Below, one piece after another: positions 4,017 to 32,781 of a DNA stretch of 64,000 nucleotides (positions are counted from its first letter, which is position 1; each line of letters begins with the position of its first letter). Under the pieces are notes generated by a model. That model was not told the origin of the DNA and ran no database searches. It was given only the letters and a program-made list of their open reading frames with translations. Where the stretch lies: IMG/VR virus record IMGVR_UViG_3300024239_000011, positions 372,001 through 436,000 of that record; one strand, 5' to 3'. Both the position numbers and the translations under genes were made by a program.

Positions 4017-4088
4017 ATTATCCTCGTTCTTGTTTTGTTCTATCAATTAGGAGGTGGGTGGAATTTATCCACCCACCGGGAAAAGTTA

Positions 4089-5027: not shown

Positions 5028-5258
5028 TTACGACCCAATCCGTCCGCCGTCAATAACAATCGTCCCGGTTGCAATCGCATTTTGCGGCGGTACTGCCCCA
5101 GACAGCCGGTCGTTCAATTGCACGTTCTTCAGAAGCAACTCGTTAATTGCGCCAACCAATTCAGCCGCTTGCGGCATAGGAATGGTCATTTCACGGCTAC
5201 CAGCCTGAACACATTGGTTAAATCGTCTTAGAAATTTTTCAACTGCTTCAATTTTCAT
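5028..5258 (-). CDS. Hypothetical protein
   Basis: 76-aa ORF translationally coupled to the upstream gene. Confidence 0.6.
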   Translation of the reverse strand: MKIEAVEKFLRRFNQCVQAGSREMTIPMPQAAELVGAINELLLKNVQLNDRLSGAVPPQNAIATGTIVIDGGRIGS

Positions 5259-6674: not shown

Positions 6675-7493
6675 TTAGCCAATCTCAGTTTTACCGTCTT
6701 CGCGTCGGAAAACGCGGACATGTGATGCCGAAGTTACGAAGGCGTCAGTGGCTTCGTCGGTGTCATCGCCAATCGAGCGGCAGATGTCCTCAAACCAACG
6801 ATCCACAATCATACGGTCAGTGAACCCAGTATACCCGGACGCCGTAAGGGTATCGATGAACTTATCATTCCAGTCCAATTCGAAGTACAACCCATTGACG
6901 CCAAGTTCTGGGTCATACTCACTGTCGATGACCCCAATATAAGGCTTGCCCTGAAGGGTCGCCACTTCCTTGTCATGCTGATGTTGAGTGATCTTCCCCG
7001 CAGCCAGATCAATTCCATGAAGCGCGACTTTTAAATCCACGCTGTCTTCAGCATGCGTCGCCTTGGCTACCTCGGTATCATGGGTGTATCGGTCGATTTC
7101 GCCATGGCGCAACTTAATACCCAATTCACCAATAACGCGGTCGCGGTCACTGTGTTTGTAATTGATAGCATTGGATGCCATCTCGAAATCACGTTCATTG
7201 ATACGCTGATGTTCAAACTCAACAATCAACCGCGCCAATTCGCGTGTATCACCCTCTGGATATTTTAAATCCAGAACCGCAAGATCATATTCGTATTGAC
7301 TGATCTTTTCATATTTCAGATCAAGTCCCAGATTGAGCATTTTGTATTCGAACGACCCAGTTTCATGATCAATTTCGATCATGCGGCGCTCAAGTGCTTC
7401 GCCGGTAAGATAGTATTCAGCTTCCGCACGAGCGCGGGTCTTACCCTTAAGCCCCCAACTGGCGGGCCATACAGAAAATGGTAATTTAAACAT
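6675..7493 (-). CDS. Conserved jumbo-phage hypothetical protein with about four internal ~35-aa helical repeats
   Basis: Repeats KISQYEYD / RINERDFE / EIDRYTHD / KITQHQHD; C-terminal FELDWNDKF...DRWF; TAAATA at 7532. Confidence 0.7.
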   Translation of the reverse strand: MFKLPFSVWPASWGLKGKTRARAEAEYYLTGEALERRMIEIDHETGSFEYKMLNLGLDLKYEKISQYEYDLAVLDLKYPEGDTRELARLIVEFEHQRINERDFEMASNAINYKHSDRDRVIGELGIKLRHGEIDRYTHDTEVAKATHAEDSVDLKVALHGIDLAAGKITQHQHDKEVATLQGKPYIGVIDSEYDPELGVNGLYFELDWNDKFIDTLTASGYTGFTDRMIVDRWFEDICRSIGDDTDEATDAFVTSASHVRVFRREDGKTEIG

Positions 7494-19113: not shown

Positions 19114-19126
19114 ATAAACACCTCGG

Positions 19127-19408
19127 TTAAACTAGCGAGCGGAACAAACCAAGAACATTGATCGCAGCAAAAACCACGTTCAATGCCATAATAAAAGCAT
19201 TATTTCTCATGATTGCCGACGTAATCAAACATACGTTACTCACGAGAAAAATGGTGTATAAAAGCTGGAAGGGAGTCGCCTGCTGATAGATTGCCATCAA
19301 GACTGCACCCGCCATTCCGGCGATGGTACCGACAACTTCAATCAGCAATGCGACTCGCTTATTAGCCCAGTCGTCCATGATCTGTGAAAAGAGGTTCGGA
19401 CGATCCAC
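19127..19408 (-). CDS. Small 3-TM membrane protein
   Basis: Three hydrophobic segments; terminal INVLGL. Confidence 0.65.
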   Translation of the reverse strand: MDRPNLFSQIMDDWANKRVALLIEVVGTIAGMAGAVLMAIYQQATPFQLLYTIFLVSNVCLITSAIMRNNAFIMALNVVFAAINVLGLFRSLV

Positions 19409-19413
19409 TGGAT

Positions 19414-19704
19414 TTACTCAGCGGAACCGGCCATGGCTTCATCAAGATAGCCAGCACGATGTAGAAGCTGCTCGACCACACCGATCTTGTCCTGCTCATC
19501 ACCAAGCGAACGCTTATGGGCAACGGCAAGCGCCTTCGACAGATCGGCAGGCTTCACGTCCAGCTTCTCAGCCAGGGACTTGGTAGCCTCCTTCAGACCT
19601 TCCTTCATATAAGCAATGTCGTTAAGGGTCTGAATACCTTCCTTGATGAAGGACTCCAGTTCAGGATCGTGGTTGCCGGGGGTAACGGTGGCGTCATCAG
19701 CCAT
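19414..19704 (-). CDS. T4 DsbA / GapR-like double-stranded DNA-binding protein
   Basis: Helical L..FIKEG...I...KE.LKE....AEKLDVKP..L.KA..VAHK pattern; next to the polymerase; TTGACC-N18-TAAGAT at 19763-19792. Confidence 0.6.
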   Translation of the reverse strand: MADDATVTPGNHDPELESFIKEGIQTLNDIAYMKEGLKEATKSLAEKLDVKPADLSKALAVAHKRSLGDEQDKIGVVEQLLHRAGYLDEAMAGSAE

Positions 19705-19822
19705 TTAAATCTCCATTAGGAATCTTGCCAGTGAAAAAGCCCGATCTCTCGGTTACTGGGCGATCTTATGGAGTCTGATCAGTGGGGGTCAATTTAAAAC
19801 CGGGCAGGCGGCCAACCGGTGA

Positions 19823-20176
19823 TTACTTCTTCGTTTTCTTGGAGTTCCGGTGTTGTTTCCAAGCAGTGGCATAGAGAACGTCTTGCCATTTCTTACCATA
19901 CCGCTCCTTAAACTCTGGTTTGCGGTCGTTGATCCACCCTTCCATTCCGGGCGGTGCCACTTCCATTACTTGCCCCTCGGATATTGTCCGAACGACAATG
20001 GCGGATTCGCCTAGGAACGACTCAAATGCCTTTTTGGTGTCAAAGTCGTTCCGGCGAAGGTTTCCAAGCTGATCCAAGAACATCACCGAGAATTTCTTCA
20101 TCAGCGGAACAAGAGCTTCTGGGGTTTGTTCAAACCCATCAATGATCTCGGATAATAACATGGCGGCAATCCCCAT
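19823..20176 (-). CDS. Hypothetical late protein
   Basis: APPGME.WI...K..FK.RYG...VLYATAWK motif; TAAATA at 20193; alternative start MLLSEII. Confidence 0.65.
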   Translation of the reverse strand: MGIAAMLLSEIIDGFEQTPEALVPLMKKFSVMFLDQLGNLRRNDFDTKKAFESFLGESAIVVRTISEGQVMEVAPPGMEGWINDRKPEFKERYGKKWQDVLYATAWKQHRNSKKTKK

Positions 20177-20179
20177 TTA

Positions 20180-20689
20180 CTAGTTCTCATCGTATTTAGC
20201 CATATCCTCCATATCCTTTGTAATACGGCGCTTAGCGTCCCACCGCTTACCACTCTTCTCAGCCTTGCGCTGACCGCGCCGGGTTTCACTGTGACGAGCC
20301 GTCAGAAACACCTTGTACCGATGAGGGGAATTATCAGGAAAACCCTTATAGAGTTCCTTCACCCGATACACCCACTCGACCGCCGCATCCAAACTTACAA
20401 ACGGTCCAATGGGATCGGGAACCGGAACCCAATATGGTCCCACATATTCAGTATCACCCGTGAGGATACATGAATAGCTATTCCGCCAATGATTACCACC
20501 AATATAATACCGCCCGAATTCAAAATACCGAAACCCCTTGTACGGTTGTGTGTATTCTTCCTCGGTGTACCAACCCGCCCCCCTTGGCGAATCTTCAACA
20601 TAGGCGAACTTCCAGCCCTTTCGTTCACAGATTTGCCGCTTGGTTCCAGCCGACCAACGACCATCATTCCTTGCACGTGCGCGTGACAT
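20180..20689 (-). CDS. Hypothetical basic protein
   Basis: 169-aa ORF with SD GGAGG. Confidence 0.65.
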   Translation of the reverse strand: MSRARARNDGRWSAGTKRQICERKGWKFAYVEDSPRGAGWYTEEEYTQPYKGFRYFEFGRYYIGGNHWRNSYSCILTGDTEYVGPYWVPVPDPIGPFVSLDAAVEWVYRVKELYKGFPDNSPHRYKVFLTARHSETRRGQRKAEKSGKRWDAKRRITKDMEDMAKYDEN

Positions 20690-20788
20690 GCGTCGCCTCC
20701 CTGATCTTCTTGTTATGCCCTAAGAGGTATTTCACAACTCCGTCATACCAATCGTGTTCTTCACGATCATATTCGGTCATTTCGATGG

Positions 20789-21027
20789 GCGTTCCATGGG
20801 TTGGCGAACGCAGCAGCCATTACCGGCACGCGGACGCAATTCGGATGTTTGGTGGAATCAGCCTAATCCGGAAACAATCGTTCCAGCATTAGGCGCGTAT
20901 ACCGCATAGTCAGATAGTGCGGTCATACCTTGATGAAAACCTCGGCATATAGAGGTTTTCAAAGAGATATCATTGCCACGCAAGTATCTCTGAGCGTTAC
21001 TATACAACTCAAACAAATATCTGTCAA
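20789..21027 (-). ncRNA. Candidate structured non-coding RNA or leader behind a consensus sigma70 promoter
   Basis: TTGACA-N17-TATAGT (20999-21027) followed by five hairpins; no minus-strand ORF of 60 aa or more. Confidence 0.45.
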
Positions 21028-21031
21028 TAGG

Positions 21032-21676
21032 CTATATCGCCAACCGCTTGTATTCACTCAACATCGCACCCGACCGCTTCCAATTGTCACTTTCCGGGAT
21101 GTCACGATTGTATTCAGACCACCGTGGACCGCGCTGAATTACAGTATGAAGAGGATACTGGTTATATTCAACCACCTCGACAATACCGAGATTGATCATA
21201 GAAACGATAATTCGTTCAGTATTGGGCGTGCTGTGCCAGATCGCACCCCACATACGCGGTTGATGTGGAAACGGCGCTACGTACCCCATCATTTGCATGG
21301 TGGATTTACCAAGCTTGCGCACCTTACCCTTCATGATCTTGGCTTTCGCCGCATCATCTAGAATGGGGGTGGTGATGCTCTTGATGTATGCCGCATGCTG
21401 TTTCTGCCTTTTGGTAGTGTAAGCGTCAATGCGCTCCTGAATTTCGTCTTCTTCCTCAAGAGCAAATTCACGCCCTTGCTGCTGGACCAGCATAGCTGCC
21501 CGACGAATAACCATCAGAGGTTCTTCGGGGCGCGTGATCTGGTTCGCCACCAAATACATGCACACTTCCCCGACAACATCTACCACACGGGTATAGGTGC
21601 GATGGCGAAAAACCAACCGTTGTGCCAGTTCCGGCTTGAACGCGGCAATCGCATCGATCAATTCTTGGCGGCGCAT
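21032..21676 (-). CDS. Hypothetical protein
   Basis: 214 aa; SD GGAG; TTGACA-N18-TATGAT at 21703-21732. Confidence 0.7.
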   Translation of the reverse strand: MRRQELIDAIAAFKPELAQRLVFRHRTYTRVVDVVGEVCMYLVANQITRPEEPLMVIRRAAMLVQQQGREFALEEEDEIQERIDAYTTKRQKQHAAYIKSITTPILDDAAKAKIMKGKVRKLGKSTMQMMGYVAPFPHQPRMWGAIWHSTPNTERIIVSMINLGIVEVVEYNQYPLHTVIQRGPRWSEYNRDIPESDNWKRSGAMLSEYKRLAI

Positions 21677-21744
21677 GGCACGTTGTCTCCGAATACTTGA
21701 CCATCATAATATTCGTGACTCGTATTTGTCAAGTGATGCACAAG

Positions 21745-21776
21745 AAAAAGGGCTGATCTTGCGACCAGCCCTTTTT
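21745..21776. terminator. Intrinsic terminator (bidirectional type)
   Basis: aaaaagggctg-N10-cagcccttttt. Confidence 0.8.
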
Positions 21777-21811
21777 ACGCTTCCTGAATGTTCGAGAGAC
21801 AGGGGCGCAGA

Positions 21812-22297
21812 TTACGTCGGGAAGTTGAACTTACCGAAGCCACTGGCGGCGCGCTTGACGCCGGTCGGGTCGGTGTTGTCGTCATTGACCACCGGAGCGG
21901 GGGTCGAAGTGGGAACGGAAACCGCCGGGACACTGGACATGGGCTGGGTGGTCGAAGTCGATCCGGTCGTCACGGCGGTGCCATGCAGCGCATCGAACTC
22001 GTCAGGGGTCATGGCGTGCTGATTGGTGGCGTCGTAGTTGGACGCCGACTCGTTCGGCGGCAGATACAGGGTGGCGACGACGTGCTGACCGTCCTCGCTG
22101 CGGACGACGGTGATCTGCTCTTCACGATAGCTGTAGTTGGACAGCGCCAGGACGTTGGTGTGCAGGTAATCGCGCACCTGACGGGTGCGGACCCACGTAC
22201 CACGCTTCTTGACTTCGTTGGCGATATCCACGCTGGTGAACATCTTGCCCTGCCCGATGTATTCCTGAACAACGGCTTCGATCTTATCCTGGCTCAT
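21812..22297 (-). CDS. Hypothetical protein, probable winged-helix N-domain and Thr/Ser/Pro-rich tail
   Basis: FTSVDIANEVK...RQVRDYL helices followed by a beta wing; TTGACT-N17-TATTAT at 22327-22355. Confidence 0.65.
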   Translation of the reverse strand: MSQDKIEAVVQEYIGQGKMFTSVDIANEVKKRGTWVRTRQVRDYLHTNVLALSNYSYREEQITVVRSEDGQHVVATLYLPPNESASNYDATNQHAMTPDEFDALHGTAVTTGSTSTTQPMSSVPAVSVPTSTPAPVVNDDNTDPTGVKRAASGFGKFNFPT

Positions 22298-22370
22298 GGC
22301 AAATACCCCGAGAAATGGTTTAAAAAATAATAGATGTTTTCTTTTAAAAAGTCAACCCACCACACAAATT

Positions 22371-22404
22371 TCGCGAGGTATCTGCCCCTGTAGATACCTC
22401 GCGA
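22371..22404. terminator. 13-bp stem just past the PARP stop
   Basis: tcgcgaggtatct-N8-agatacctcgcga. Confidence 0.6.
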
Positions 22405-22411
22405 CTTGTTT

Positions 22412-23932
22412 CTAGCGTTGTTCCAGTTCGATCAGGTGAGTAATCGTGGACTGGGCGGGATCAGCGACGATGAATTCATCGTTCGCCAGATCAGCACCAC
22501 CAGGGGCGTAGATCGAGTTGAAACCACGCGGAGTACCCGACGATAGGGCACGCGGGGCACAGTGAATCTTGCCCATGGTGAACTTGGTGATGAACAGGAA
22601 GGCGTTGCCGCGATGACCGCTGTTGGACAGACCCGACCGCGACCAGTTATTGAGGGCGTAATTCAGAGCCTTCGTGGACACGTTGGCGGCATAGACGCCA
22701 TTACCGTACATACGACCGGTCACGCCCGGCGCGTTCACCGGGGGAACGTAGAAACCATTCATCATGATCGACAGGACGTTGCGGTTCGGGGAACCATGGA
22801 ACAGGTCCACCACGTCATAGTCGCTGACGATGGTCTTGCCACCGCCGGGACGCTTGTGACCGATGATGGTACCAGCAGCACCCTGCTTGGCAGCTTCCAT
22901 GCGCTCCATCATCTTCATGAAACGGGCACGTTCCGCAATGCCTTCCACGTCGTAGCAACGAACCGGCTTCCAGCTATCCAACTGACGATGGTTACGGGTG
23001 CTGTTGAGGTAGTGAAACAGCGTTTCGGTGGTGTCGCGATCCGACATGAACATCTTGATCGGCAGATCGGGCGCCTTACCGTCGTCGGCGTCGTTGGTGA
23101 TCTGCACAGTGGACTTCATCTGGTCCAGCAGATCGTATTCCGCCAGCAACTTCGCCATGTCGAAAATCAGGTCGCTGTCCTGAATAGTATAACCGCGAGC
23201 AAATGGGCGCGGAATCAGCGAGAAAGTCTGGGTATTCAAATCACGGAAATCGCGATTGGACATGTCGGCGCTCGAACCATCGGTCGGGATGAAATTCTTC
23301 AGATCATCCAGCACCGCCAACGCCCGGTTGATGTGATCCAAGGTCAGCGGACCCAGCGGGGTTTCCAGACCATGGGCGGTCATCTTGAATGTAGTCGCCG
23401 TGGTAATGTTGTGAATGTTCTCTTGGAACAGTTGACTGAGAACCTTCTGAACCTGCGGCTCGGAGAACTGACTGAACATGGCAGCCAGACCGCTGTTGCC
23501 ATTCGTTTTCGAGACAGAGGCAGTCGCGGCAGCACCACTCACCTTGCGGATATTGGGCGAACCCACGGTCGGCTGAACCACGTCCACCTTGACGTAGTTT
23601 TCGCGATACTTAGTGCCGTCAGCGGCAGTCTTGGACTTGCCCTTTTCCTTGTCCTTGACGATGGTGGCGAACTCGGCTTCCAGCGACGACAGGTCGGTGT
23701 CGGGACCGCGAACGTCGTACACACCGCCGTCAGCGGTACCGCCCGCCAGACGACCGTAGTGCGAGAACAAGCGATATTGCCCGGTGGACTCGTTGTGCAT
23801 TAGTTCCAAACAGTAGAATTTGTTATTATTCCCGTCCACGTTGCTACACATGAGCAAAGCCCACTTAATAGTTTTATCAAAACCATCCGTGTCGTCAGTG
23901 GGGACTTTAACTGCGCGATAGGACTTGGACAT
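22412..23932 (-). CDS. Poly(ADP-ribose) polymerase (WGR + regulatory helical + catalytic domain)
   Basis: NNNKFY...HYGR (WGR); TPLGPLT..HI..A (regulatory); LFHGS, GRMYGNGVYAA..STKALNY, NDEFIV (H-Y-E triad); TTGACA-N16-TAAGAT at 23962-23989. Confidence 0.92.
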   Translation of the reverse strand: MSKSYRAVKVPTDDTDGFDKTIKWALLMCSNVDGNNNKFYCLELMHNESTGQYRLFSHYGRLAGGTADGGVYDVRGPDTDLSSLEAEFATIVKDKEKGKSKTAADGTKYRENYVKVDVVQPTVGSPNIRKVSGAAATASVSKTNGNSGLAAMFSQFSEPQVQKVLSQLFQENIHNITTATTFKMTAHGLETPLGPLTLDHINRALAVLDDLKNFIPTDGSSADMSNRDFRDLNTQTFSLIPRPFARGYTIQDSDLIFDMAKLLAEYDLLDQMKSTVQITNDADDGKAPDLPIKMFMSDRDTTETLFHYLNSTRNHRQLDSWKPVRCYDVEGIAERARFMKMMERMEAAKQGAAGTIIGHKRPGGGKTIVSDYDVVDLFHGSPNRNVLSIMMNGFYVPPVNAPGVTGRMYGNGVYAANVSTKALNYALNNWSRSGLSNSGHRGNAFLFITKFTMGKIHCAPRALSSGTPRGFNSIYAPGGADLANDEFIVADPAQSTITHLIELEQR

Positions 23933-24021
23933 ATTGATGCTCCAACGAATCATTTGACCGCATCTTAACGTCAAAAATTAAATTGTCAATGGGAAGAACA
24001 ATAAATATAATATAAGAAACT

Positions 24022-25182
24022 ATGGAGAAAATTATGCCAATCTGTAAACATTGTGGCACAGAAACCACACATATCCCAACTCATTATCGACTGCACTGCC
24101 AAGAGTATAAAGAATTCATCACCCAAATTGAAGAGAAACTTACCAAAGAATTTATGATCGCCGAATACATTATTGCTGAAAAATCAGTGGTTGATTTAAC
24201 ACGAGAACTTGGTTTGGAAAAAGGGCGATTGATTGAACAGAAACTCGATGAATATGGTATCGTGCGCCGTCGTAATTACTCATCCACTAAAACCGTCCGT
24301 GATAAGAAGAAACAAACCTATCGTGAACGGTATGGCGTCGATCATCAATCTCAGATCGATACAGTCAAAGAAAAGAAGAAACAAACCTATCGTGAACGGT
24401 ATGGCGTAGAGCATGCGTTGCAATATGCAGAATTTTTTGAAAAAGCTCGACAGACTACCCGCGAACGTTTTGGGGTTGACTACGCCCTTCAAACCGAGGA
24501 GTCCCGCGCAAAACAACGCCAAACTAATTTAGAACGTTATGGTGTTGAGTATTTGCAATCGCGCAATATGCAGGAACAATCAAAACAAACATGTTTAGAA
24601 AAATATGGGGTTGAATATGTGATGCAATCAAACGACATCAAAGCACGCATGGTTGCCACCCACACCGATTTATATGGCGGGATGCTCCGTGGATCACCGT
24701 CCATACGGGGACAAATAGAAAGGACAACTCTCAAACGGTATGGCGTGAAGAATATTTCTACTATAACCCGCGATAAAGCAAAAGCAACCTGTGTACGTCG
24801 TTATGGTGTTGAATTTGCTATGCAAAACCCAACGATTTATGAACAGCAACGCAAATCTGCGTTCCGACGCAAACTATTTGTTTTCCCATCAGGTCACAAA
24901 GAATATCTTCACGGCTATGAGCCGATGGTTATTCTCGACCTACTCAAAGCCGGAATACCCGAAGAGGAAATCATCACTTCTGCCCGCAAAATGCCAAAAA
25001 TCACCTACCAAACCTCCGATGGTAAAACCCACCGCTACTACCCAGACATCTACCTGCCACGATACAATATGTTCATTGAAGTGAAATCCATCTATACGTA
25101 TCGCGCCAACAAAGATATCAACCTACTAAAACGAGAAGCCTGCATTGATGCAGGCTTCCGTTTTAATTTTGCAATACGCTGA
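24022..25182 (+). CDS. Free-standing endonuclease-like protein with ~23-aa (R/K)YGV repeats and C-terminal PD-(D/E)XK domain
   Basis: CKHC...HC finger; about 8 YGV/FGV repeats; RYYPDIY...IEVKS; ATAAATA at 24001. Confidence 0.8.
   Translation: MEKIMPICKHCGTETTHIPTHYRLHCQEYKEFITQIEEKLTKEFMIAEYIIAEKSVVDLTRELGLEKGRLIEQKLDEYGIVRRRNYSSTKTVRDKKKQTYRERYGVDHQSQIDTVKEKKKQTYRERYGVEHALQYAEFFEKARQTTRERFGVDYALQTEESRAKQRQTNLERYGVEYLQSRNMQEQSKQTCLEKYGVEYVMQSNDIKARMVATHTDLYGGMLRGSPSIRGQIERTTLKRYGVKNISTITRDKAKATCVRRYGVEFAMQNPTIYEQQRKSAFRRKLFVFPSGHKEYLHGYEPMVILDLLKAGIPEEEIITSARKMPKITYQTSDGKTHRYYPDIYLPRYNMFIEVKSIYTYRANKDINLLKREACIDAGFRFNFAIR
24304..24407 (+). repeat. 35-bp exact direct repeat with 69-bp period inside the endonuclease gene
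   Basis: aagaagaaacaaacctatcgtgaacggtatggcgt at 24304 and 24373. Confidence 0.85.
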
Positions 25183-25187
25183 TCCGG

Positions 25188-25412
25188 TCACTTATCTACT
25201 TTTACCGGGAGATCAGGAATCTCCCGCGAAGAATAAGCGCAGATAATTTTGGTTTCCGGATGGGTCAGCCACCCACCACCAGCACCACTGCGCCACTCAA
25301 CATAAGTAACGACTTGCGGATTACAGTTTTGTGAAGGGCGAGTAGTGGGTTCGGTACCTTCAACACACCCAAATAGTGCTAAACAAGCACCAACAACTAA
25401 CATCTTACGCAT
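25188..25412 (-). CDS. Small putative lipoprotein
   Basis: MRKMLVVGACLALFGC lipobox; overlaps the metG stop. Confidence 0.55.
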   Translation of the reverse strand: MRKMLVVGACLALFGCVEGTEPTTRPSQNCNPQVVTYVEWRSGAGGGWLTHPETKIICAYSSREIPDLPVKVDK

Positions 25413-26928
25413 TCTTCGGTACCTCAATACGCGGGAAGACAATTGACGGTTCGGGAAGCTTCGCCTCGTAGGGGATGAGAACGTCCTGATGCCGAATTTC
25501 CGCACTGCACAGTTTTAGAATTTTTTCCGCCGATGCGGGAATGACCGGCTGAAGCAGGAACGCCACCTTGACGACGTTCTGAAGAGTGTCGCTCAACACC
25601 TCGTTCAGCTTGTCCGGATCATCTTTCAGCTTCCACGGCTCAGCCGCCGAGAACACACGATTGATATCCGTGGTTGCCGCATGAAGGTGTTCCAGGGCGC
25701 CACGGAAATCCAACGCAGCAAATGCCGCTTGGGCAAAGCTGGCGTAGGTTTCCACCCGGCTGGTCAAGGAAGACCCCACCGCCGAAAACCGCACGATGCC
25801 ATCACAATGGCGATGCAACAGGGTTAGTGCCCTGTTCAACAGGTTACCCAGATCATTGGCGAGTTCGCTATTGTACCGCTTCGTGATGGCATCTTCCGAG
25901 AATTCTCCATCATCACCGAAATTGACTTCACGAAGCAGGAAATACCGCAGCGCGTCCAACCCGTATTTTTCGATTAACGCGGGGACACTGACCGCATTCC
26001 CTTCAGACTTGCCAATCTTCTGCTGTTTGACCAGTTTGTTGCTCGGACGCGTCCACCAACCATGGGCGAATACGCGATTGGGAACCGGCAGACCCGCAGC
26101 CAAAAGAAAAGCAGGCCAAAACACAGCATGGAAACGAACGATATCCTTGCCAACGACATGGGTTACGTCATAACCAGTCCAATCGGTTGCGGGATACCCG
26201 GCAACGGAAAGGTAATTGGTCAGCGCATCCAACCACACATAAATGACGTGTTTTTCGTCCCCAGGCACCGGGATGCCCCAGGAAATGGACGACCGCGACA
26301 CACAAAGGTCATCAAGCCCGCCCTTGACAAATTGCCGCACCTCATTCCGGCGCGGCACCGGCTGAACAAAATCCGTTTCGTACAACTTCAGGAGTTCGTC
26401 GCCCCATTGCGAGAGCCGGAAGAAATAGGCTTCCTCTTCCACCCACTCACACGTGGCGCCGGTTGGATTTGCAGTGACAATCTTACCACCATCAGTATTT
26501 TCGGTAATCGTCACCTCGGACTCTGTGTAATAGGCTTCGTCCTTGAGAGCATACCACCCACCATAGGTGCCCTTGTAAATTTGGTTACGCTCGACCAGGG
26601 TGTTCCATAAATGAATTACCGCTTCGCGGTGCCTGTCATCGGTGGTGCGGATAAAATCGTCGGGAACAACCCCGATCAACGGAAGCAAATTGCGAAAATG
26701 TTGGGAAACATCGTCCACGAAGTCCTTCGGTGCAATTCCTGCCAGTGCAGCCGATTTCTGGACCTTCTGACCATGTTCATCGGTTCCAGTGGTGAACAAC
26801 ACCTCATCGCCATGAAGGCGGTGGAAACGCGCCAAAACGTCGCAAACCACAGTGGTGTACGCATGACCGATATGGGGACGGTCATTCACGTAATAGATGG
26901 GGGTCGTGATTAGCCGCTGTTTGTTCAT
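25405..26928 (-). CDS. metG: Methionyl-tRNA synthetase (short monomeric MetRS1 type)
   Basis: ITTPIYYVN..PHIGHAY, GTDEHGQK, YVWLDALTNY, GKDI.RFH..FWPA, KIGKS (KMSKS-like). Confidence 0.96.
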   Translation of the reverse strand: MNKQRLITTPIYYVNDRPHIGHAYTTVVCDVLARFHRLHGDEVLFTTGTDEHGQKVQKSAALAGIAPKDFVDDVSQHFRNLLPLIGVVPDDFIRTTDDRHREAVIHLWNTLVERNQIYKGTYGGWYALKDEAYYTESEVTITENTDGGKIVTANPTGATCEWVEEEAYFFRLSQWGDELLKLYETDFVQPVPRRNEVRQFVKGGLDDLCVSRSSISWGIPVPGDEKHVIYVWLDALTNYLSVAGYPATDWTGYDVTHVVGKDIVRFHAVFWPAFLLAAGLPVPNRVFAHGWWTRPSNKLVKQQKIGKSEGNAVSVPALIEKYGLDALRYFLLREVNFGDDGEFSEDAITKRYNSELANDLGNLLNRALTLLHRHCDGIVRFSAVGSSLTSRVETYASFAQAAFAALDFRGALEHLHAATTDINRVFSAAEPWKLKDDPDKLNEVLSDTLQNVVKVAFLLQPVIPASAEKILKLCSAEIRHQDVLIPYEAKLPEPSIVFPRIEVPKNA

Positions 26929-26993
26929 GGGTCATTCCTGTCTACTCGAACCCAGACCGTTTAGCACGTCAGATGTATAGAATCAAGGCAGAC

Positions 26994-27022
26994 AAAAAGA
27001 AAAGGGCGGTTTCCCGCCCCTT
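26994..27022 (-). terminator. Intrinsic terminator
   Basis: GC stem gggcgg/ccgccc with a U-tract on the minus strand. Confidence 0.7.
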
Positions 27023-27275
27023 ACCAAGGGTCCACCATTTGGCGTTTGAGCCGACGACCTTCCTCGGCGGAAACAATTCGTCCTTCACCCATGTCCTTGA
27101 TGAAGTTCTCGCATTCCGCCTTGGTCATCACGTCCGATACGAAATGCGTACCGACAACACAATGTGTACCGACAACTTCAGGAACCGAAACGGGAACCGG
27201 CTGGGGTCGATACCCACGCACTGCCTGCTCGGATTGCTGCAAATACTGATACGGTTTCATTTCGAACCTACGCAT
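27021..27275 (-). CDS. Hypothetical protein
   Basis: Start overlapping the HNH stop, SD GAGG. Confidence 0.5.
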   Translation of the reverse strand: MRRFEMKPYQYLQQSEQAVRGYRPQPVPVSVPEVVGTHCVVGTHFVSDVMTKAECENFIKDMGEGRIVSAEEGRRLKRQMVDPW

Positions 27276-27621
27276 AATCAGCCTCGTGTTTCTTTCGAAG
27301 ATGTTCTGGGTAGCGCCCAGAACGTGCCCATAAATCTTCTTTCGGGCGTTCAGCAACTCGTTGCCGACCGCGTTCCTCATTGCACTTTTTACAAGCTGCA
27401 ACGTGCCGTTTATCTTCGGTCATCACTTGGCGTTGTGGGTGAAATCGATCAAACAAATGATCAAGGGTACAAAGATTATCGGGGAAATGCCGTGTCTTCG
27501 TACACGTATCATGATCGAAATCCAACAACATCGGATTACCGCACCAATAACATTTTCCACCTTGCTCGTGGTAGCATTTGATGCGGGAACGACGCCTTTT
27601 TTCAGAAGACGAAATAGTCAT
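27268..27621 (-). CDS. Small HNH endonuclease
   Basis: QGGKCYWCG...TLDHL...VAACKKCN. Confidence 0.85.
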   Translation of the reverse strand: MTISSSEKRRRSRIKCYHEQGGKCYWCGNPMLLDFDHDTCTKTRHFPDNLCTLDHLFDRFHPQRQVMTEDKRHVAACKKCNEERGRQRVAERPKEDLWARSGRYPEHLRKKHEADYA

Positions 27622-27627
27622 ATTGGA

Positions 27628-27942
27628 TTATTTACGAATCACCTTAACGTGGATGCGGTGGAAGAACGTCGAGAAGTCCCACTTGGACATGGGAACCCCC
27701 TCGATCTTGATCTTCACATTAGGGTTGTAGTCCGCAGTAAACCACTTCAGAAGTTCTTTAAACGCTTTACACGCGGCTTTTTCTTCCTCGTCAGATGGGC
27801 GATGCCCTGGACCTTGCCCGTGAAACCGATACCCATAGAGTTCGGCTTCGTCGCCCGCGTACCTGTTATTACCATGGTAGCATTCCACCAACTCGGCATA
27901 CAACCGGGCAATATCTTTTACTGGGAGGTTGATCAAGGACAT
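27628..27942 (-). CDS. Hypothetical protein
   Basis: 104-aa ORF. Confidence 0.6.
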   Translation of the reverse strand: MSLINLPVKDIARLYAELVECYHGNNRYAGDEAELYGYRFHGQGPGHRPSDEEEKAACKAFKELLKWFTADYNPNVKIKIEGVPMSKWDFSTFFHRIHVKVIRK

Positions 27943-28044
27943 TACTTATACCTATCAAGTACAATCACAAGAATGGCGAACCCCATAAGTAGGACTTGGG
28001 TGGGCGTCAAACATTCCGCCCACCCAACCCCTTATACCAGCATA

Positions 28045-30498
28045 TTAGGCAGCTTTCTTGCCCAAAATCGCAGCTTCCTTAGCGGCTTCTTTCTGATCCT
28101 TCACACGCTGAAGGCTATCCGCCACGGTCTTGTCAAGTCGCAGTTCCACGAATCTCGGGAGGAAAAGTGAGTACCGACCGTTGCTTCCCGTGGGCGGCAT
28201 GATGTCGTTGGCTTTGACGGTCATGATCTTACCGATCACATTATCACGATCCTTCCAAAGCTGCTGACGCATGGCATCGGTATAGCCCGACACGTCAACC
28301 GAAAGCAAACCATCCGACGTGCGGCAGGTAATCGATCCGAATGTGCTTTCGTTCTTACCGTTACCGGCGACGAAGCCGACGATTTCCAGATCAACCTCAA
28401 ACTCCATCTTGAGCTTGACCTGTTCCTTTGAAGTGCCATCCTTCCAGATAGCGCCCGGCATCTTGATGACGGTGCCTTCCTTGCCGCGACCCAGCATGTC
28501 GATATAGTGTTCGTAGGCTTCGCGCAGCGAATGAACCACGCGGGTCGGGATCAGGCGAACCAGACCAGTTTCGGTCAGCTTCGTCATCAGGGCGCCCAGT
28601 TCGTCTTCCGGCAGCGTCTTGATCGCAGCCAGGGTCATACCCGCCAACTGCGCCACCAGAGACAGCAGACGTTCGCGGTACGCGACGTTGTACTTGCCCT
28701 TTGGCTTCACTTCTGACAGCGGGATTTGGTCCCAGATCATGTAGATCGGCTGCTCGTTGGCAGCGAAGGTACCGCCCTTGAGAACGCTATTGAGGATACC
28801 GTTACCGATCTCGCGCGGCAGAACCTTGCCGTCACGCAACACCAGCAATTCGCCGTGTTGCTGCGTGCCCGTGGACAGGCGAGAACGGATTTCGTCCACC
28901 AGGGCGGGGAACTGCTCGATGGGGAACGGCGAACCCTGACGGCTGGCGATACCAACCACACCCGCAGCTTCGTTGTCCACGTTGGCGAACATACCGTCCG
29001 CCTTCTCCTGGGATAGCACACCAAGCTTCCAGTCCCACGTGTCCAGCTTCACATCTTTAGGAAGCGAACAGCGCATGTACGGGAACTCGGGGATCAACCC
29101 CTTCACCGCCTTGTTGATGGTGCTTTCAGAGAAATTAGCGCGCAAATCCTTGCGCACGATGCGCCACAATAGATCAGCCGAAGCCTGGGTCAGGCGTTCA
29201 GTTTCCGCCCGGAACGCTTCACGGGCATCGCCGCCGGTCAGCTTGCGGGCGATCAGTTCATCGAGAATCTGCCACGTCTTGGCGTCGAAGGTGGCGGCAC
29301 CAAACGGACCCGTGGGACGCGCCGGAATGATGCCGTAGGTCTTGAAGGGGTTGTAGGTGTATTCCAGCACCCGGCAGAAAGCGGCGTCGCCCGCCGCGCC
29401 CTTAACCATCGACTCCTTGGCGTTCTTGCTCGATTCACCCGCGATCTTGTCGATCAACGCGAGGATGGCATCGGACCCGCCATTAGACGAAGCGGCAACC
29501 ACGGGCGCCGACTTGCCCATATCAAAATCGATCCAAGCAGCCGACGTACCGGCGGTGTAAAGGGCATTGGAATTCTTGATCAGGACGCCACCAACCTGGG
29601 CACAATAATCCGCGAATTCCTTGGCGGCATCCGGGGCGTCGAAATCGATCAGCTTCTTCGGAGCAACATAGACGTTGCCATCGGTGAAATGCTGGAACAT
29701 CCCGGTAAGGGCAGCCAGCACCTCGACGCGATCCTTCTGGGTGATCGAGCAGGTACCCGCCTTGAAATCCGCAAACGGGATCACATCGACCACCGCGAAC
29801 TTGGTCGGAGTGGCAGCCGTGAACCCGCCATCCAAAACGATGCTGCCCGGCACTCCGGGCAGCATCTTTTCCAGACCCTTTACGATATCCGGATAGCTGT
29901 GGTTCTCGCGCCCGAAGCTGGCATGCAGGGTTACGGTACCCGCATCCTTATTGATCACCGCGAACAACCGGGACGCCAGTTTGACATCCAAATACTGGGG
30001 ACCGGTCGGCAGGGTCGTGGAAACCGTCGCCACTTGGGCGCCGAAAATGGGGATCAGATACTTAGTGGCATCACCACCGATCTGGCTCAGAACCGCATTA
30101 ATCTCGTAGGGACGGATATTGCAGCGAAGGTCGCGCAGCAGAATGCGGCGGTACCAAAGATTCCATTCCTTAGCATCGGAAAGATTCGCCGCCTTCATCG
30201 CAGCAGCGCGGGCGTTATCGCCCGACAATTCACGGGACGCCAGCTTGCTGGTCAAGTTGGTGAAATCCGCCCACGACAGGGTATCGACCGCAAACAGGTC
30301 ACCCAGATCATTGCCGTCTTCCTGAATTTCAGGAGCCTTGGTCAGACCAAAGGTCTGATAGTTGTCGTAACAGAGCCGGGCGCCTTCGAAGAACTCGATG
30401 CATCCCGCATCCCAGGCAGCGCGAATGATGGTTTCCTTCGCAGCCGTATCGCTGGCAGCGGTAGCGGCAAGTTTCTCGACAACGTGAATGGGCTTCAT
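28045..30498 (-). CDS. ATP-dependent DNA ligase with an extra degenerate ligase module at the N-terminus
   Basis: C-terminal module: EKADG, SRQG, HGEL, WDQIP, EGTVIK, VKLK, LPRF; the N-terminal module repeats DBD+NTase with degraded motifs; TTGATT-N17-TAGGAT at 30526-30554. Confidence 0.9.
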   Translation of the reverse strand: MKPIHVVEKLAATAASDTAAKETIIRAAWDAGCIEFFEGARLCYDNYQTFGLTKAPEIQEDGNDLGDLFAVDTLSWADFTNLTSKLASRELSGDNARAAAMKAANLSDAKEWNLWYRRILLRDLRCNIRPYEINAVLSQIGGDATKYLIPIFGAQVATVSTTLPTGPQYLDVKLASRLFAVINKDAGTVTLHASFGRENHSYPDIVKGLEKMLPGVPGSIVLDGGFTAATPTKFAVVDVIPFADFKAGTCSITQKDRVEVLAALTGMFQHFTDGNVYVAPKKLIDFDAPDAAKEFADYCAQVGGVLIKNSNALYTAGTSAAWIDFDMGKSAPVVAASSNGGSDAILALIDKIAGESSKNAKESMVKGAAGDAAFCRVLEYTYNPFKTYGIIPARPTGPFGAATFDAKTWQILDELIARKLTGGDAREAFRAETERLTQASADLLWRIVRKDLRANFSESTINKAVKGLIPEFPYMRCSLPKDVKLDTWDWKLGVLSQEKADGMFANVDNEAAGVVGIASRQGSPFPIEQFPALVDEIRSRLSTGTQQHGELLVLRDGKVLPREIGNGILNSVLKGGTFAANEQPIYMIWDQIPLSEVKPKGKYNVAYRERLLSLVAQLAGMTLAAIKTLPEDELGALMTKLTETGLVRLIPTRVVHSLREAYEHYIDMLGRGKEGTVIKMPGAIWKDGTSKEQVKLKMEFEVDLEIVGFVAGNGKNESTFGSITCRTSDGLLSVDVSGYTDAMRQQLWKDRDNVIGKIMTVKANDIMPPTGSNGRYSLFLPRFVELRLDKTVADSLQRVKDQKEAAKEAAILGKKAA

Positions 30499-30553
30499 AT
30501 GAGACGACTCCGTGAACGATAAATAATCCTAGCAGGCTTTCCGGAGAAAATCA

Positions 30554-30943
30554 ATGCCACGTGGACATGTTATCGCTGGTGTAATAATTATGGCATTAGC
30601 TGCGTGTGCGCCACGCTTTGACCAGAATGAATTTTTGTTGGTAGCGTCAGTGAAACAACAATCACTCAACGGATTCAAAGCATGCGACACCGACCCTTAT
30701 AGTGCAATTGATCAGTATGGGTCAAAAACTTTTGAAGCAACTCAATTATACGCCATTTACAGTGAATACTTGTTAGATAATCGGTTGTCTTATCAGATGT
30801 CTAACCAGCTTTATGCCATGGCCAACGAATTAACTGCCAAAAAAGGTAAAGTAGTTAGCAAATTTTACTGTCGTGAAAAATTCAACAACCTAACAATCGC
30901 CGCCGACAGAATTTTAGAAGCATTAGCCAAAAAGGACAGGTAA
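30554..30943 (+). CDS. Late lipoprotein
   Basis: Lipobox ALAAC; SD GGAG; ATAAATA at 30519. Confidence 0.7.
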   Translation: MPRGHVIAGVIIMALAACAPRFDQNEFLLVASVKQQSLNGFKACDTDPYSAIDQYGSKTFEATQLYAIYSEYLLDNRLSYQMSNQLYAMANELTAKKGKVVSKFYCREKFNNLTIAADRILEALAKKDR

Positions 30944-30944
30944 A

Positions 30945-31193
30945 ATGACAACTAATATTTTAGAAGACCTTATCGGATCGGACGATAAAATCGTAAAAAC
31001 AACAGCCGTCAAATTAAAGGCATATCAAGGTGCTTTGGAAATGGGTGAAATGTCCAAAGCGGAATACGACGAACTGATAGCAGACTTACTTGATCTTTCA
31101 GGAATTGATCATCTGGCGTCCGATCTTGAACGAAAGACTGCTATAAGAAAAGCATTTGAAACTATGTTAAGTATAGCATCAGTAGTGGCTTAA
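30945..31193 (+). CDS. Hypothetical protein paired with the lipoprotein
   Basis: 82-aa helical ORF 1 nt downstream. Confidence 0.65.
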   Translation: MTTNILEDLIGSDDKIVKTTAVKLKAYQGALEMGEMSKAEYDELIADLLDLSGIDHLASDLERKTAIRKAFETMLSIASVVA

Positions 31194-31840
31194 CGGGAAA
31201 ATACCTGTTCCATAAGGTCTTCAAGTTCTTCAGTCTTGACCACCGTGAACCCCATCCGATTAAGCTCTTCAATGAACATTTGCGGAGTTTTTTCATCAAC
31301 TTTACGATAGTCGTTCGGGAGTTCTTGCCACGGACGAAGCATCGGATGGGTTTTTGCACGAGGATTCACTTTTTCACCATAGCGCCAACCTTTCTGTACC
31401 CGTTCGTTCATCCACATAGTATGCTGTGATTTAGCAATCGCTTCGCATAGTTTTTCATAAGAATCGTCTTTGACCACAATGGCGTCAGCGAGCATTTCGC
31501 GCTGCTGTGATATTTCAACCTGGGTTGTTTCTAATAAAAAGTCTTTGTCGTAGTAGGTATTCCACTGCTCTAAAACGGTCTTGATTTCTTTGTTGGTCAA
31601 ATCACGCTTCAAAGGAATGTCGTAGATATGTTTTCCATCAGCCATTTTACGGTGAATCAACATAACTTCAGCGGGACCACCTTTCGGGCGCACTAATGAT
31701 ACTGATGAAATGATGTTCTGCGGTCCATAAGTCTCTACGATCTTAAACCACCGACGAACGTCGGTCTTACTAAGCTCTTCATCGACTTGGATTCGGATAT
31801 AGCGTGGTAGTTTGACGGCCACTGGTTGGGACGCATCCAT
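31190..31840 (-). CDS. RyR-domain protein
   Basis: H..WM.ER...GWRYG.....KTHPMLRPW.ELP. Confidence 0.85.
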   Translation of the reverse strand: MDASQPVAVKLPRYIRIQVDEELSKTDVRRWFKIVETYGPQNIISSVSLVRPKGGPAEVMLIHRKMADGKHIYDIPLKRDLTNKEIKTVLEQWNTYYDKDFLLETTQVEISQQREMLADAIVVKDDSYEKLCEAIAKSQHTMWMNERVQKGWRYGEKVNPRAKTHPMLRPWQELPNDYRKVDEKTPQMFIEELNRMGFTVVKTEELEDLMEQVFSR

Positions 31841-31852
31841 TAGATCACCTCT

Positions 31853-32164
31853 TTATGAATTTTTCTTTGTATCTTCGTACACCGCACCAAATATATACGA
31901 CCCTAAAATTGCACCCGCCAATGAAAATGCCGATGTAACAATGGTTTCATATAGACGACTATCAGTACCTTTATACATGATATAGCCTATACAAATTGCA
32001 CAAAATACTAACGTGCAAATAATCAGTTTACGTCTTATTTTCCACGAACCATTATTATTACGATTTATCGCAGCCAGAGCATGACCCATCGGAGCAAGCT
32101 CTGGTATAACCGCAATTGCTGGATTTACCGCCATCGATGTATTAATACTCTCGTCCTCACTCAT
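31853..32164 (-). CDS. Small 2-TM protein (holin-like candidate)
   Basis: WKIRRK + TM1, TM2 ending GSYIFGAVYED. Confidence 0.55.
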   Translation of the reverse strand: MSEDESINTSMAVNPAIAVIPELAPMGHALAAINRNNNGSWKIRRKLIICTLVFCAICIGYIMYKGTDSRLYETIVTSAFSLAGAILGSYIFGAVYEDTKKNS

Positions 32165-32677
32165 ATTCTTTCTCCTTTCGTCGTTGGAGAGCTTCACTTA
32201 TCTTTTTCTTATGCTCTTCTGAAAGTTTTCTACCTCTATTACCAGAACCGAGTTTCATGCGCGTTTCATCAGAAATAATGCGTTTATGATTTGCCTCTCC
32301 AATTTTTCGTCTATGTTCTTCTGAAAGTTTTCTTCCAGATAACGCCTTGCTCAAGTTTTGACAATGTTCTTCTGAAAAATTTCTTCCATAATTAGGATGA
32401 TTTTCACCAGTATTTAGTTCTCGAAGTTTTTCTCGTGTTTCATCTGACAATTTCATTCCTGTGTGACTATCGGACATTTTCTTACATATTTCTTCGCTCA
32501 TCTTTTTTCCAAACCAATGTCCCAATAGTTGAATTGACTGCCAGGGAACATTTCATTGCTCTCATCAGTTCCGCCAAAAGCGCGCGGTATGACATGATGC
32601 GTCTCAGTATAACAAGTTGGAACATCACGATTTCTGGCGCGTTCAATAAGTTGCGCATAAACAAATTCATGTTTCAT
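32157..32677 (-). pseudogene. Disrupted HNH-NUMOD3 homing endonuclease
   Basis: 5' part Y..LI.RA..R....YTETHHVIPRAFGGTD; 3' NUMOD3 repeats in another frame; the IVELTAREHFIA codons lie on the opposite strand (32525-32561). Confidence 0.8.
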
Positions 32678-32781
32678 AATGAGAAAACTCCTGATATAAA
32701 TAGCGTTGGTGGGACAGCCCGGCATACTCCTGACTGGGTTTTCTGTCGTTACGAGCGACAGAATTACCATCAGTATTTAGC

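Follow-up and report, generated by a model that had tools for sequence, protein, structure and literature searches.

A predicted inactive ligase remnant fused to an intact T4-type DNA ligase in a 543-kb phage, and a wider set of predicted inactive ligase homologs

Why would a phage make a DNA ligase that carries a second, apparently inactive ligase in front of it? A preliminary description, made from sequence alone, had noted an open reading frame with this layout in a 64,000-nucleotide window (positions 372,001 to 436,000 of IMG/VR record IMGVR_UViG_3300024239_000011, a 543,035-bp genome). To evaluate this reading, we examined whether the fusion is real, where each half comes from, and whether similar modules occur elsewhere. 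Window coordinates are used throughout.

A complete ligase behind a degenerate one

The observation in the preliminary description is confirmed: the open reading frame exists and encodes 817 residues, every motif reported is present at its position, and the proposed boundary of the N-terminal half (residues 1 to 326, 29521 to 30498) is exact. The gene, its parts, and its two landmark neighbors are as follows.

28045 to 30498, minus strand: the whole gene (P0001), a pseudo-ligase/ligase fusion of 817 aa; 28045 to 28047 is the stop codon. It is the only ligase gene detected in the genome.
30055 to 30498, minus strand: N-module DNA-binding domain (DBD; residues 1 to 148), an 8-helix ligase DBD with the signature WNLWYRRILLRDLRC (residues 112 to 126, 30121 to 30165).
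29521 to 30054, minus strand: degenerate nucleotidyltransferase (NTase) domain of the N-module (residues 149 to 326), with no OB domain.
29479 to 29520, minus strand: linker MGKSAPVVAASSNG (residues 327 to 340).
29074 to 29478, minus strand: C-module DBD (residues 341 to 475), T4-ligase type.
28399 to 29073, minus strand: C-module NTase domain (residues 476 to 700), with motifs I (K500), III, IIIa, IV, and V intact.
28048 to 28398, minus strand: C-module OB domain (residues 701 to 817), with motif VI (LFLPRFVELRLDK, residues 778 to 790).
31190 to 31840, minus strand: RyR-domain gene (PF02026, E 2e-15), the conserved upstream neighbor of the ligase slot in this phage group and a possible partner.
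17482 to 19113, minus strand: family B DNA polymerase gene (PolB; exonuclease plus part of the polymerase domain, by Pfam), the downstream landmark of the syntenic replication block.

Homology of the N-module to ligases is statistically solid. It matches phrog_114 (E 6e-16) and a domain of Pmar-Lig, the ATP-dependent DNA ligase of Prochlorococcus marinus (6RAU, E 1e-22), with its DBD aligning to Pmar-Lig residues 23 to 116, and BLASTP against its own C-half gives E 8e-10 at 23% identity. An AlphaFold2 model has a pLDDT of 93.4 and a pTM of 0.87, with helices over residues 3 to 147 at pLDDT above 90 except for the loop at 60 to 75. Foldseek matched this model best to Pmar-Lig 6RAR (E 3e-26) and also to T4 ligase 6DT1 (E 1e-13). 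The catalytic features, however, are eroded. The motifs read DVKLASRL (residues 171 to 178), VLDGGF (221 to 226), VGGVLIK (302 to 308), and AWIDFD (321 to 326). K173, R177, D223, K308, and W322 are kept, whereas the motif I Asp is deleted, the motif I Gly is A175, the motif III and IV Glu residues are G225 and G303, and the motif V lysines are D324 and D326. The last four positions are conserved in 81 to 86 of 86 active relatives. In an active ligase of this type, the motif I Lys is the nucleophile, the motif I Asp and Gly are metal-water ligands, and the motif III and IV Glu residues are metal and ribose ligands. In Pmar-Lig numbering, with residue roles taken from PMC6698739, the equivalents of D169, E220, E319, K338, and K340 are lost. 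Here the preliminary description needs a correction, since it listed motif I simply as eroded to VKLASR, although this stretch retains the lysine and the arginine. No OB domain with motif VI follows; only 0 to 13 residues come after motif V before the C-module begins.

The C-module, in contrast, has the complete T4-type layout. Its motifs are EKADGMF (498 to 504), HGELLV (548 to 553), WDQIP (586 to 594), EGTVIK (674 to 679), EQVKLK (692 to 697), and LFLPRFVELRLDK, and the intact NTase motifs are invariant in a 71-sequence alignment. It matches phrog_114 (E 2e-113) and Pfam PF01068 at residues 495 to 697, above the curated cutoff, while the OB family PF14743 matches residues 712 to 765 with E 3e-4, below the curated cutoff. 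The T4 ligase structures 5WFY and 6DT1 match residues 345 to 468 and 647 to 799, respectively. The module is 49% identical to the ligase of Pseudomonas phage hairong; T4's LDFLF clamp loop was not identified in it. An ESM Atlas model of the whole protein (pTM 0.45, pLDDT 0.79) agrees with two independent modules, and residues 334 to 340 of the linker have a pLDDT below 50. A combined alignment of the full-length protein was not used for modeling because it placed the N-type homologs on the C-half (identities of 17 to 25%, all invariant columns in the C-half).

The preliminary description had named an assembly artifact as a result that would undo the finding. A 927-nt contig from another sample of the same study spans the junction (28830 to 29756, 8 differences, no gaps), and a second fusion of the same architecture (P0010, 788 aa) lies in the same gene order in an unrelated sample. 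Among the 120 best relatives of the C-half, only P0001 and P0010 have the fused length. The internal Met of P0010 aligns with the start Met of stand-alone C-type ligases, G340 occupies this ancestral start position in the window's protein, and both linkers share K(Q)SAP(A)V. No internal Shine-Dalgarno-like site was seen before M327 at the junction.

The reported codon bias is also real. GC3 is 0.68 in the N-half and 0.73 in the C-half, against 0.24 to 0.48 in most neighboring genes. Because both halves share this bias and GC content does not separate them, base composition gives no sign that the C-half is a recent arrival. The N-half frame has 0 stops over 341 codons, against 12 in each of the other two sense frames, and the chance of an open frame at this base composition is about 4e-6. 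The frame also remains open in P0010 (about 4e-9 by chance), although the two N-modules share about 34% identity and differ by 2.32 substitutions per site, against 0.68 for the C-modules. Among the 40 best-supported variant sites from mapped reads, none lay inside 28400 to 30600, and scans of IMG/VR and JGI metagenomes with the N-half returned only the window's own contig; the inference of selection therefore rests on the open frames rather than on codon-level tests.

Two ligase lineages and a recurrent class of OB-less homologs

The two halves come from different ligase lineages. The N-half is 41% identical to stand-alone Pmar-Lig-type ligases such as P0002 but only 22 to 23% identical to its own C-half, and the two separate with 100% support in our trees. 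Gene order is informative on the source of the N-module. In related phages of 424 to 608 kb (loci L024, L044, L049, L061, L062, L066, and others), a single active Pmar-type ligase of 450 to 465 aa follows the RyR gene and precedes PolB, in the order fiber, RyR, ligase, PolB, and the window's fusion lies in that same place. PolB homologs lie downstream of the ligase slot in L024, L049, L066, L070, L071, and L073, and an RyR homolog lies just upstream of the active or dead ligase in about 30 of 80 IMG/VR loci and in L009, L010, and L014. In the tree, the N-modules nest inside this huge-phage clade, although a polytomy leaves them unresolved as sister to any particular syntenic ligase. The closest stand-alone C-type ligases (P0154 and P0162) have no dead module nearby and lie in a different replication module (DnaB, primase, WGR, ligase).

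We next asked whether such modules occur without a fused ligase. About 35 sequence clusters of stand-alone, OB-less homologs, inactive as judged from their residues, were found; one further hit (P0032, 3594 aa, 38 matched stretches) is a repetitive Thr/Ala/Ser-rich protein and was discarded as spurious. Among 33 of these homologs, the nucleophile Lys is present in 8 and the motif IV Glu in none, yet the motif I Arg, motif III Asp, and motif IV Lys are kept in 33/33 and the acid that contacts adenine N6 in 31/33. In 86 active ligases, all of these are essentially invariant. In the dead class, the DBD is better conserved than the NTase domain (0.30 versus 0.275); in the active class, the order is reversed. 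We define this class by an end within about 18 aa of motif V, by degenerate catalytic Lys/Asp/Glu/Glu/Lys positions, and by retention of the motif I Arg, motif III Asp, motif IV Lys, and motif V Trp. The window's N-module fits this definition but differs in being fused and in having Ala at the motif I Gly position. With P0010 it forms its own clade (95 to 96% support), not resolved as sister to any dead clade, and the dead state needs at least 3 to 5 origins on the trees. Neither PADLOC nor NCBIfam has a family for these modules.

The stand-alone dead genes are not next to a live ligase in L008, L010, L011, L012, and L014, and fusion is the exception rather than the rule. Yet at the genome level, both near-complete genomes with a dead copy in the slot carry another ligase (the window's genome, and one with a LigA-type ligase), whereas none of six complete genomes with an active copy does. 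This tally rests on only 2 versus 6 genomes.

Origin and possible roles of the dead module

The interpretation in the preliminary description is partly supported. Its claims that the N-half is a noncatalytic DBD plus NTase without an OB fold, that the halves have different origins, and that the dead module is under selection hold, while the proposed roles in end bridging or clamp docking remain unsupported. The scenario that we favor, with moderate confidence, is a read-through fusion of two once-separate, adjacent ligase genes. In this view, the N-module is the remnant of the Pmar-Lig-type ligase resident in the replication block of these phages, and the C-module is a complete T4-type ATP-dependent ligase of a different clade that now does the nick sealing. 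After the newcomer took over catalysis, the resident copy would have lost its OB domain, its three metal-binding acids, and its motif V lysines, while keeping its fold, its DBD, and the residues that hold the adenosine moiety, under weaker but real purifying selection. The dead module may still bind something that the old ligase bound, such as duplex or nicked DNA through the DBD, an adenine nucleotide in the crippled pocket, or lineage-specific partners such as the RyR-domain neighbor or the replisome, and through the flexible linker it would tether the foreign ligase to that site.

We regard the fold and homology, the lost residues, the intact C-module as sole detected ligase, the separate lineages, the synteny, the fusion boundary and its rarity, the open frames, the wider class, and the co-occurrence counts as shown by the analysis. 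The absence of catalysis in the N-module, the ligase activity of the C-module (from its motifs and its being the genome's only ligase), and any binding or tethering are inferred. No binding of DNA, nucleotide, or partner has been shown for any dead module. The N-module is mildly acidic (pI 5.2, net charge -8), within the range of active ligases but on the low side, and neither net charge nor conservation at the Pmar-Lig DNA-contact residues H89 and R120 was decisive. Contacts of this DBD type are mostly main chain, so conservation cannot prove that they are retained, and the nucleoside-contacting residues could be conserved for folding alone. A complex prediction of the N-module against the C-module scored 0.00, which is evidence neither for nor against docking.

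Alternatively, the N-module could be a neutral relic, tolerated as an N-terminal extension. Its loss of catalytic features, its roughly 3.4-fold faster evolution than the C-module, the difference between the two fusions even at the former nucleophile (K versus L in P0010), and its acidic drift agree with this model. We consider it unlikely, however, since the frame of 330 to 340 codons is intact in two diverged lineages, the predicted fold is confident, the fold-core and nucleoside-contact residues are invariant across 33 independent dead homologs, and dead-only clades of 7 to 13 clusters at 50% identity persist. Phage genomes usually delete useless DNA quickly.

The mechanism suggested in the preliminary description, a second DNA-end binder bridging two duplex ends in a natural blunt-end or double-strand-break ligase, or a clamp-docking module, is about equally unlikely. 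A complete extra DBD is kept and is the better conserved half in the dead class, the linker is predicted to be flexible, and a WGR-PARP break-sensor-like gene lies 4 kb away. There are precedents in the two DNA-bound states of human ligase III (3L2P) and in the improved double-strand-break joining by T4 ligase fused to extra DNA-binding domains (PMC7470946). Yet most dead modules are stand-alone proteins, so bridging in cis cannot be their general role. The loop after motif III is about 20 residues shorter in the N-module, at the position where T4 ligase carries its clamp-binding insertion, which gives no positive sign of T4-style clamp docking. No end-joining partner such as Ku was seen nearby, without a directed search.

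A still more doubtful possibility is a nucleotide sensor or sponge, in which the pocket would bind AMP, ATP, NAD+, or an ADP-ribose-type molecule without reacting and would regulate the attached ligase or shield or sense a metabolite contested in phage-host conflict. Residues contacting adenine N6 and N1 and the ribose are kept in 31 to 33 of 33 dead homologs, solo ligase subdomains have been proposed as NAD+ sensors in phages (PMC9503650), and PARP, ART, and NADAR genes occur in several of these neighborhoods. These residues may be structural, however, the window's N-module has an Ala and a one-residue deletion in the motif I loop that lines the pocket, and there is no match to any PADLOC family. 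Finally, that the N-module is still an enzyme of unusual chemistry is very unlikely: although K173, R177, and K308 are present, all three metal-binding acids and both motif V lysines are replaced, the OB domain and motif VI required for step 1 are absent, and P0010 lacks the lysine altogether.

Relation to known ligases and implications

Pmar-Lig (6RAR, 6RAS, 6RAU, and 6RCE) and its phage relatives are the closest match of the N-module, sharing the 8-helix DBD and the NTase fold, but with its losses the N-module cannot be filed as a ligase. T4 DNA ligase (gp30; 6DT1 and 5WFY) is the best solved relative of the C-module and shares its three domains and six motifs; the window's protein carries an extra dead ligase module at its N terminus. 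Large phages also keep stand-alone ligase-type alpha-helical DBDs (Iyer et al. 2021, PMC7824862) and solo NLig-Ia domains (Iyer et al. 2022, PMC9503650), noncatalytic pieces of ligases whose authors propose that they recruit a ligase or sense a nucleotide. Those are single subdomains, while here the whole DBD plus NTase body is kept with a degenerate active site and, in two phages, is fused to an intact ligase of another clade. Human ligase III, with a ZnF-DBD nick sensor plus NTase-OB, is a functional analogy only, since its extra module is a zinc finger without homology to the N-module. Catalytically dead yeast Dnl4 can still support end joining as a scaffold (PMC3694833), and a dead domain placed in front of a live one occurs in other enzyme families, such as the JAK pseudokinase-kinase and the HisRS-like domain of GCN2. 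We found no natural ligase in which the dead domain is itself a ligase paralog: although DNA ligases are among the best-studied enzymes, a 2020 survey of ligase architectures (PMC7470946) mentions no tandem or inactive ligase module, and no paper in the literature searched describes one.

These results bear on annotation. Hundreds of viral proteins of about 310 to 350 aa that are automatically named DNA ligase probably cannot ligate, and a phage may be scored as having a ligase when it depends on another one. A possible, though tentative, wider reading is that dead, OB-less homologs are a widespread functional class of phage pseudoenzymes. Each time a huge phage swaps its replicative ligase for a foreign one, the old ligase would be kept as a noncatalytic nick-, nucleotide-, or partner-binding adaptor, possibly working with the RyR-domain neighbor, and the window's protein would be the "Rosetta stone" fusion showing that this adaptor works together with the incoming ligase. 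If the dead module has a role, this would be the first natural ligase pseudoenzyme. It would also be a natural counterpart of the engineered T4 ligase/DNA-binding-domain fusions used to improve end joining, with possible practical value as a ligase scaffold, and a clear case of nonorthologous displacement in which the displaced enzyme is recycled rather than lost.

Architecture of the fused gene and identity of its two halves

The window covers bases 372001-436000 of a 543,035-bp IMG/VR virus record that CheckV rates as complete; the record therefore represents a megaphage. The same protein is listed in the protein database on a contig of 869,618 bases, longer than the IMG/VR record, and this other assembly may be a concatemer or a larger version of the genome. 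The gene of interest and its surroundings are as follows:

17482-19113, minus strand: family B DNA polymerase ORF of only 543 aa (exonuclease plus part of the polymerase domain); the polymerase may be split into two genes or interrupted
22412-23974, minus strand: 520-aa PARP-like gene with WGR, PARP regulatory and PARP catalytic domains, about 4 kb from the ligase
25405-26928, minus strand: methionyl-tRNA synthetase (MetRS, 507 aa), next to the ligase
27268-27621, 32157-32525 and 32498-32770, minus strand, and 24022-25182, plus strand: homing-endonuclease-like genes (HNH-like, NUMOD3) and a DUF7487 gene
27628-27942: 104-aa ORF just downstream of the ligase
28045-30498, minus strand: the fused ligase gene, encoding 817 aa (P0001)
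31190-31840, minus strand: RyR-domain gene

A preliminary description had proposed that this ORF encodes a catalytically dead ligase fused in front of an intact one. This observation is confirmed: every motif it listed is present where it was placed, and its boundary for residues 1-326 (29521-30498) is exact. Pfam recognizes only the C-terminal half (PF01068 at residues 495-697, OB_2 at 712-765), whereas the PHROG ligase family phrog_114 matches both halves over the same profile positions, the N-half with an E value of 6e-16 and the C-half with one of 2e-113. The two halves align to each other at 23% identity (E 8e-10).

To evaluate whether the fusion could be an artifact, we examined public metagenome runs and related proteins. 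Four runs from one study contain this stretch. Besides the probable source assembly, a 927-nt contig from another sample (run X2, record 7, matching 28830-29756 with 8 differences and no gaps) crosses the junction at 29479-29520, and variant contigs over the N-half are 7-9% diverged and have no indels. Independently, P0010, a 788-aa protein from an unrelated sample, has the same dead-plus-live architecture and the same neighborhood: RyR-domain gene, fusion, small gene, MetRS, and PARP. An assembly artifact or frameshift is therefore excluded. Some strains do differ nearby, since contigs from runs X2 and X4 join 27642 to 27928, skipping 285 bases, and thus lack most of the 104-aa ORF.

The C-module (residues 341-817) is a complete T4-type ATP-dependent ligase. 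Its DNA-binding domain (DBD) matches the T4 ligase DBD 5WFY, its nucleotidyltransferase (NTase) and OB domains match 6DT1, and motifs I to VI are intact and invariant in a 71-sequence alignment. It is 49% identical to the ligase of Pseudomonas phage hairong and about 60% identical to hundreds of stand-alone metagenomic ligases of 449-475 aa. It is the only ligase detected in the genome, where we found neither a second PF01068 hit nor an NAD-dependent ligase.

The N-module (residues 1-326) belongs to a different ligase clade. Its nearest relatives are stand-alone ligases of about 450 aa (P0002 at 41% identity and P0003 at 35%) with canonical motifs and an OB domain, and its best solved relative is the Prochlorococcus ligase Pmar-Lig (6RAU, domain E 1e-22). 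With a 121-sequence alignment, AlphaFold2 gave a model with a pLDDT of 93.4 and a pTM of 0.87, for which Foldseek returned Pmar-Lig (E 3e-26), T4 ligase (E 1e-13), and then cellular ligases, always over the DBD plus NTase.

We next compared the N-module with the residue roles assigned in Pmar-Lig (PMC6698739). In that enzyme, K167 is the nucleophile; D169/G170, E220, and E319 hold the catalytic metal through waters; R172 and E220 hold the ribose; E165 and the motif IV lysine hold the adenine; the motif V lysines act on the phosphates; and motif VI, in the OB domain, is needed for step 1. In the N-module of P0001, K173, R177, D223, K308, and W322 remain, but the motif I Asp is deleted, the Gly is Ala, both glutamates are Gly (G225, G303), both motif V lysines are Asp (D324, D326), and there is no OB domain. 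The N-module of P0010 is dead in a different way, with Leu at the lysine and Ala, His, Val, and Thr at the other positions. Catalysis by the N-module is therefore very unlikely, although this is inferred from sequence alone.

OB-less homologues and the origin of the N-module

An exhaustive HMMER search with the N-half found 310 relatives. Besides full-length ligases, about 35 clusters at 50% identity are proteins of 309-366 aa that stop 0-18 residues after motif V and have degenerate active sites. In 86 active relatives, the nine key positions are essentially invariant. In 33 dead ones, the nucleophile Lys survives in 8, the motif I Asp in 9, the motif III Glu in 7, the motif IV Glu in 0, and the second motif V Lys in 9; yet the motif I Arg (33/33), motif III Asp (33/33), motif IV Lys (33/33), motif V Trp (32/33), and the acid that contacts adenine N6 (31/33) are kept. 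That is, the chemistry is lost while the nucleoside-holding residues are retained.

These homologues are whole genes inside phage-like contigs, with no OB remnant downstream. In our trees, they fall in several clades nested among active ligases, and well-supported branches force at least 5 origins in the first tree and 3 in the second. Their DBD is better conserved than their NTase domain, the reverse of active ligases. No cultured phage in the INPHARED set has a close member, the best hits being real ligases at 23-30% identity, and no Pfam (for the copy in P0001), NCBIfam, or PADLOC family covers them. ESM Atlas shows several viral clusters of 309-349 aa without an OB domain, auto-named "DNA ligase family protein."

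To trace the origin of the N-module, we scanned IMG/VR, which returned 80 loci (L018-L097). Most encode active Pmar-type ligases of 440-467 aa, including those in complete 415-608 kb phage genomes, and every one of them reads KDGREEKKK at the nine key positions. In several of these phages (L074, L075, L077-L079, L094, and L097), the ligase gene is split at motif I by an insert of about 1.4 kb carrying a DUF7487-like ORF (in L074, ligase parts at 4001-4513 and 5881-6699, ORF at 5163-5582), which may be a mobile intron, an intein, or a homing element inserted at the active-site lysine. In many of the loci, the gene order is tail-fiber homologue, RyR-domain gene, ligase, and then a family B DNA polymerase. 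This is the order around the fusion in the window, where the homing-endonuclease-like and DUF7487 genes scattered around the ligase and MetRS genes break the otherwise conserved arrangement. The RyR-domain gene is the conserved upstream neighbor of this ligase slot whether the ligase is active, dead, or fused (about 30 of loci L018-L097, as well as L010 5237-5842 and L014 3601-4137), and it is a candidate partner of the ligase DBD/NTase body. Stand-alone dead copies (L046, L070-L073) sit in the same slot. The two fusion N-modules form one clade, with 95-96% support, inside the group that holds these syntenic ligases. The N-module is therefore best read as the decayed ortholog of the resident replicative ligase of the lineage.

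The fusion point supports a read-through origin. P0010 keeps, as an internal Met, the residue that aligns with the start Met of stand-alone C-type ligases; P0001 has Gly340 there, and both linkers share K(Q)SAP(A)V. Among the 120 best relatives of the C-half, only these two proteins have the fused length. The closest stand-alone C-type ligases (loci L015 and L016) lie in a different replication module with no dead gene nearby, and stand-alone WGR-domain genes sit just upstream of them. A homologue of the PARP-like gene also occupies the same relative place in the P0010 contig (L009 8138-9643). Together, these genes and the ligase may be a break-sensing and sealing module. MetRS homologues are likewise syntenic in L008 and L009. 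GC3 across 17482-30498 is bimodal: it is high in the ligase (0.68-0.73), PARP (0.70), MetRS (0.61), the 104-aa ORF (0.62), and the polymerase (0.61), against 0.24-0.48 in most neighbors, and no such bias is seen in L009.

For the DISPLACEMENT test, we asked whether genomes with a dead copy in the slot carry another ligase. Two near-complete genomes have a dead copy, and both do. The phage studied here has the fused T4-type ligase, while G001 (359 kb, 94% complete) has a LigA-type, NAD-dependent ligase split into two adjacent ORFs (locus L102, 1192-2397 and 2442-3260), one with adenylation and OB domains and one with HhH and BRCT. In contrast, six complete genomes with an active slot ligase (G006-G010 and G014) have no NAD-type ligase and no second strong ATP-ligase hit. 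The comparison of 2/2 against 0/6 gives a Fisher's exact p of about 0.04 (calculated by hand), yet the numbers are small, and the other dead-copy records are only 2-10% complete.

Constraint on the N-module and its inferred role

Between P0001 and P0010, the N-modules are 2.32 substitutions per site apart and the C-modules 0.68, so the N-module evolves about 3.4 times faster. Both N-frames are nevertheless open over about 340 codons, while the other sense frames carry 12-27 stops; the chance of this at these base compositions is about 4e-6 and 4e-9. Constraint is relaxed, but it is not absent.

Our analysis establishes the architecture of the protein, the loss of catalytic residues, the distinct lineages of the two halves, the synteny, and the persistence of the N-module. 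What the module does is an inference: it would keep a binding role and, through a disordered linker (pLDDT below 50 at residues 334-340; whole-protein pTM of 0.45 in ESM Atlas), tether the foreign ligase to what the old ligase bound. That could be DNA through its DBD, an adenine nucleotide in its pocket, or partners such as the RyR-domain neighbor. A controlled complex prediction gave no verdict. The preliminary description had suggested that the dead module bridges DNA ends, which remains a possible special case but cannot explain the many stand-alone dead proteins. Its alternative, clamp docking, is not indicated in the T4 manner, because the N-module is about 20 residues shorter in the segment after motif III, where T4 ligase carries its clamp-binding insertion. 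The interpretation in the preliminary description is thus partly supported: its structural and evolutionary reading is supported and extended here, whereas the functional roles it proposed remain hypotheses.

The closest known items are the stand-alone ligase DBDs of jumbo phages that lack a ligase (PMC7824862) and the solo NLig-Ia domains proposed as NAD+ sensors (PMC9503650); the catalysis-independent role of yeast Dnl4 (PMC3694833) and the two-module design of ligase III (3L2P) are also relevant. A 2020 review of ligase scaffolds mentions no tandem or inactive ligase module, and further literature searches found none, although the literature searched was incomplete and this is absence of evidence only. 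Non-catalytic pieces of ligases in large phages are already known; what differs here is a DBD plus NTase module with a degenerate active site, joined in P0001 and P0010 to a ligase of another clade. The finding has a reasonable chance of opening a new class of phage pseudoenzymes.
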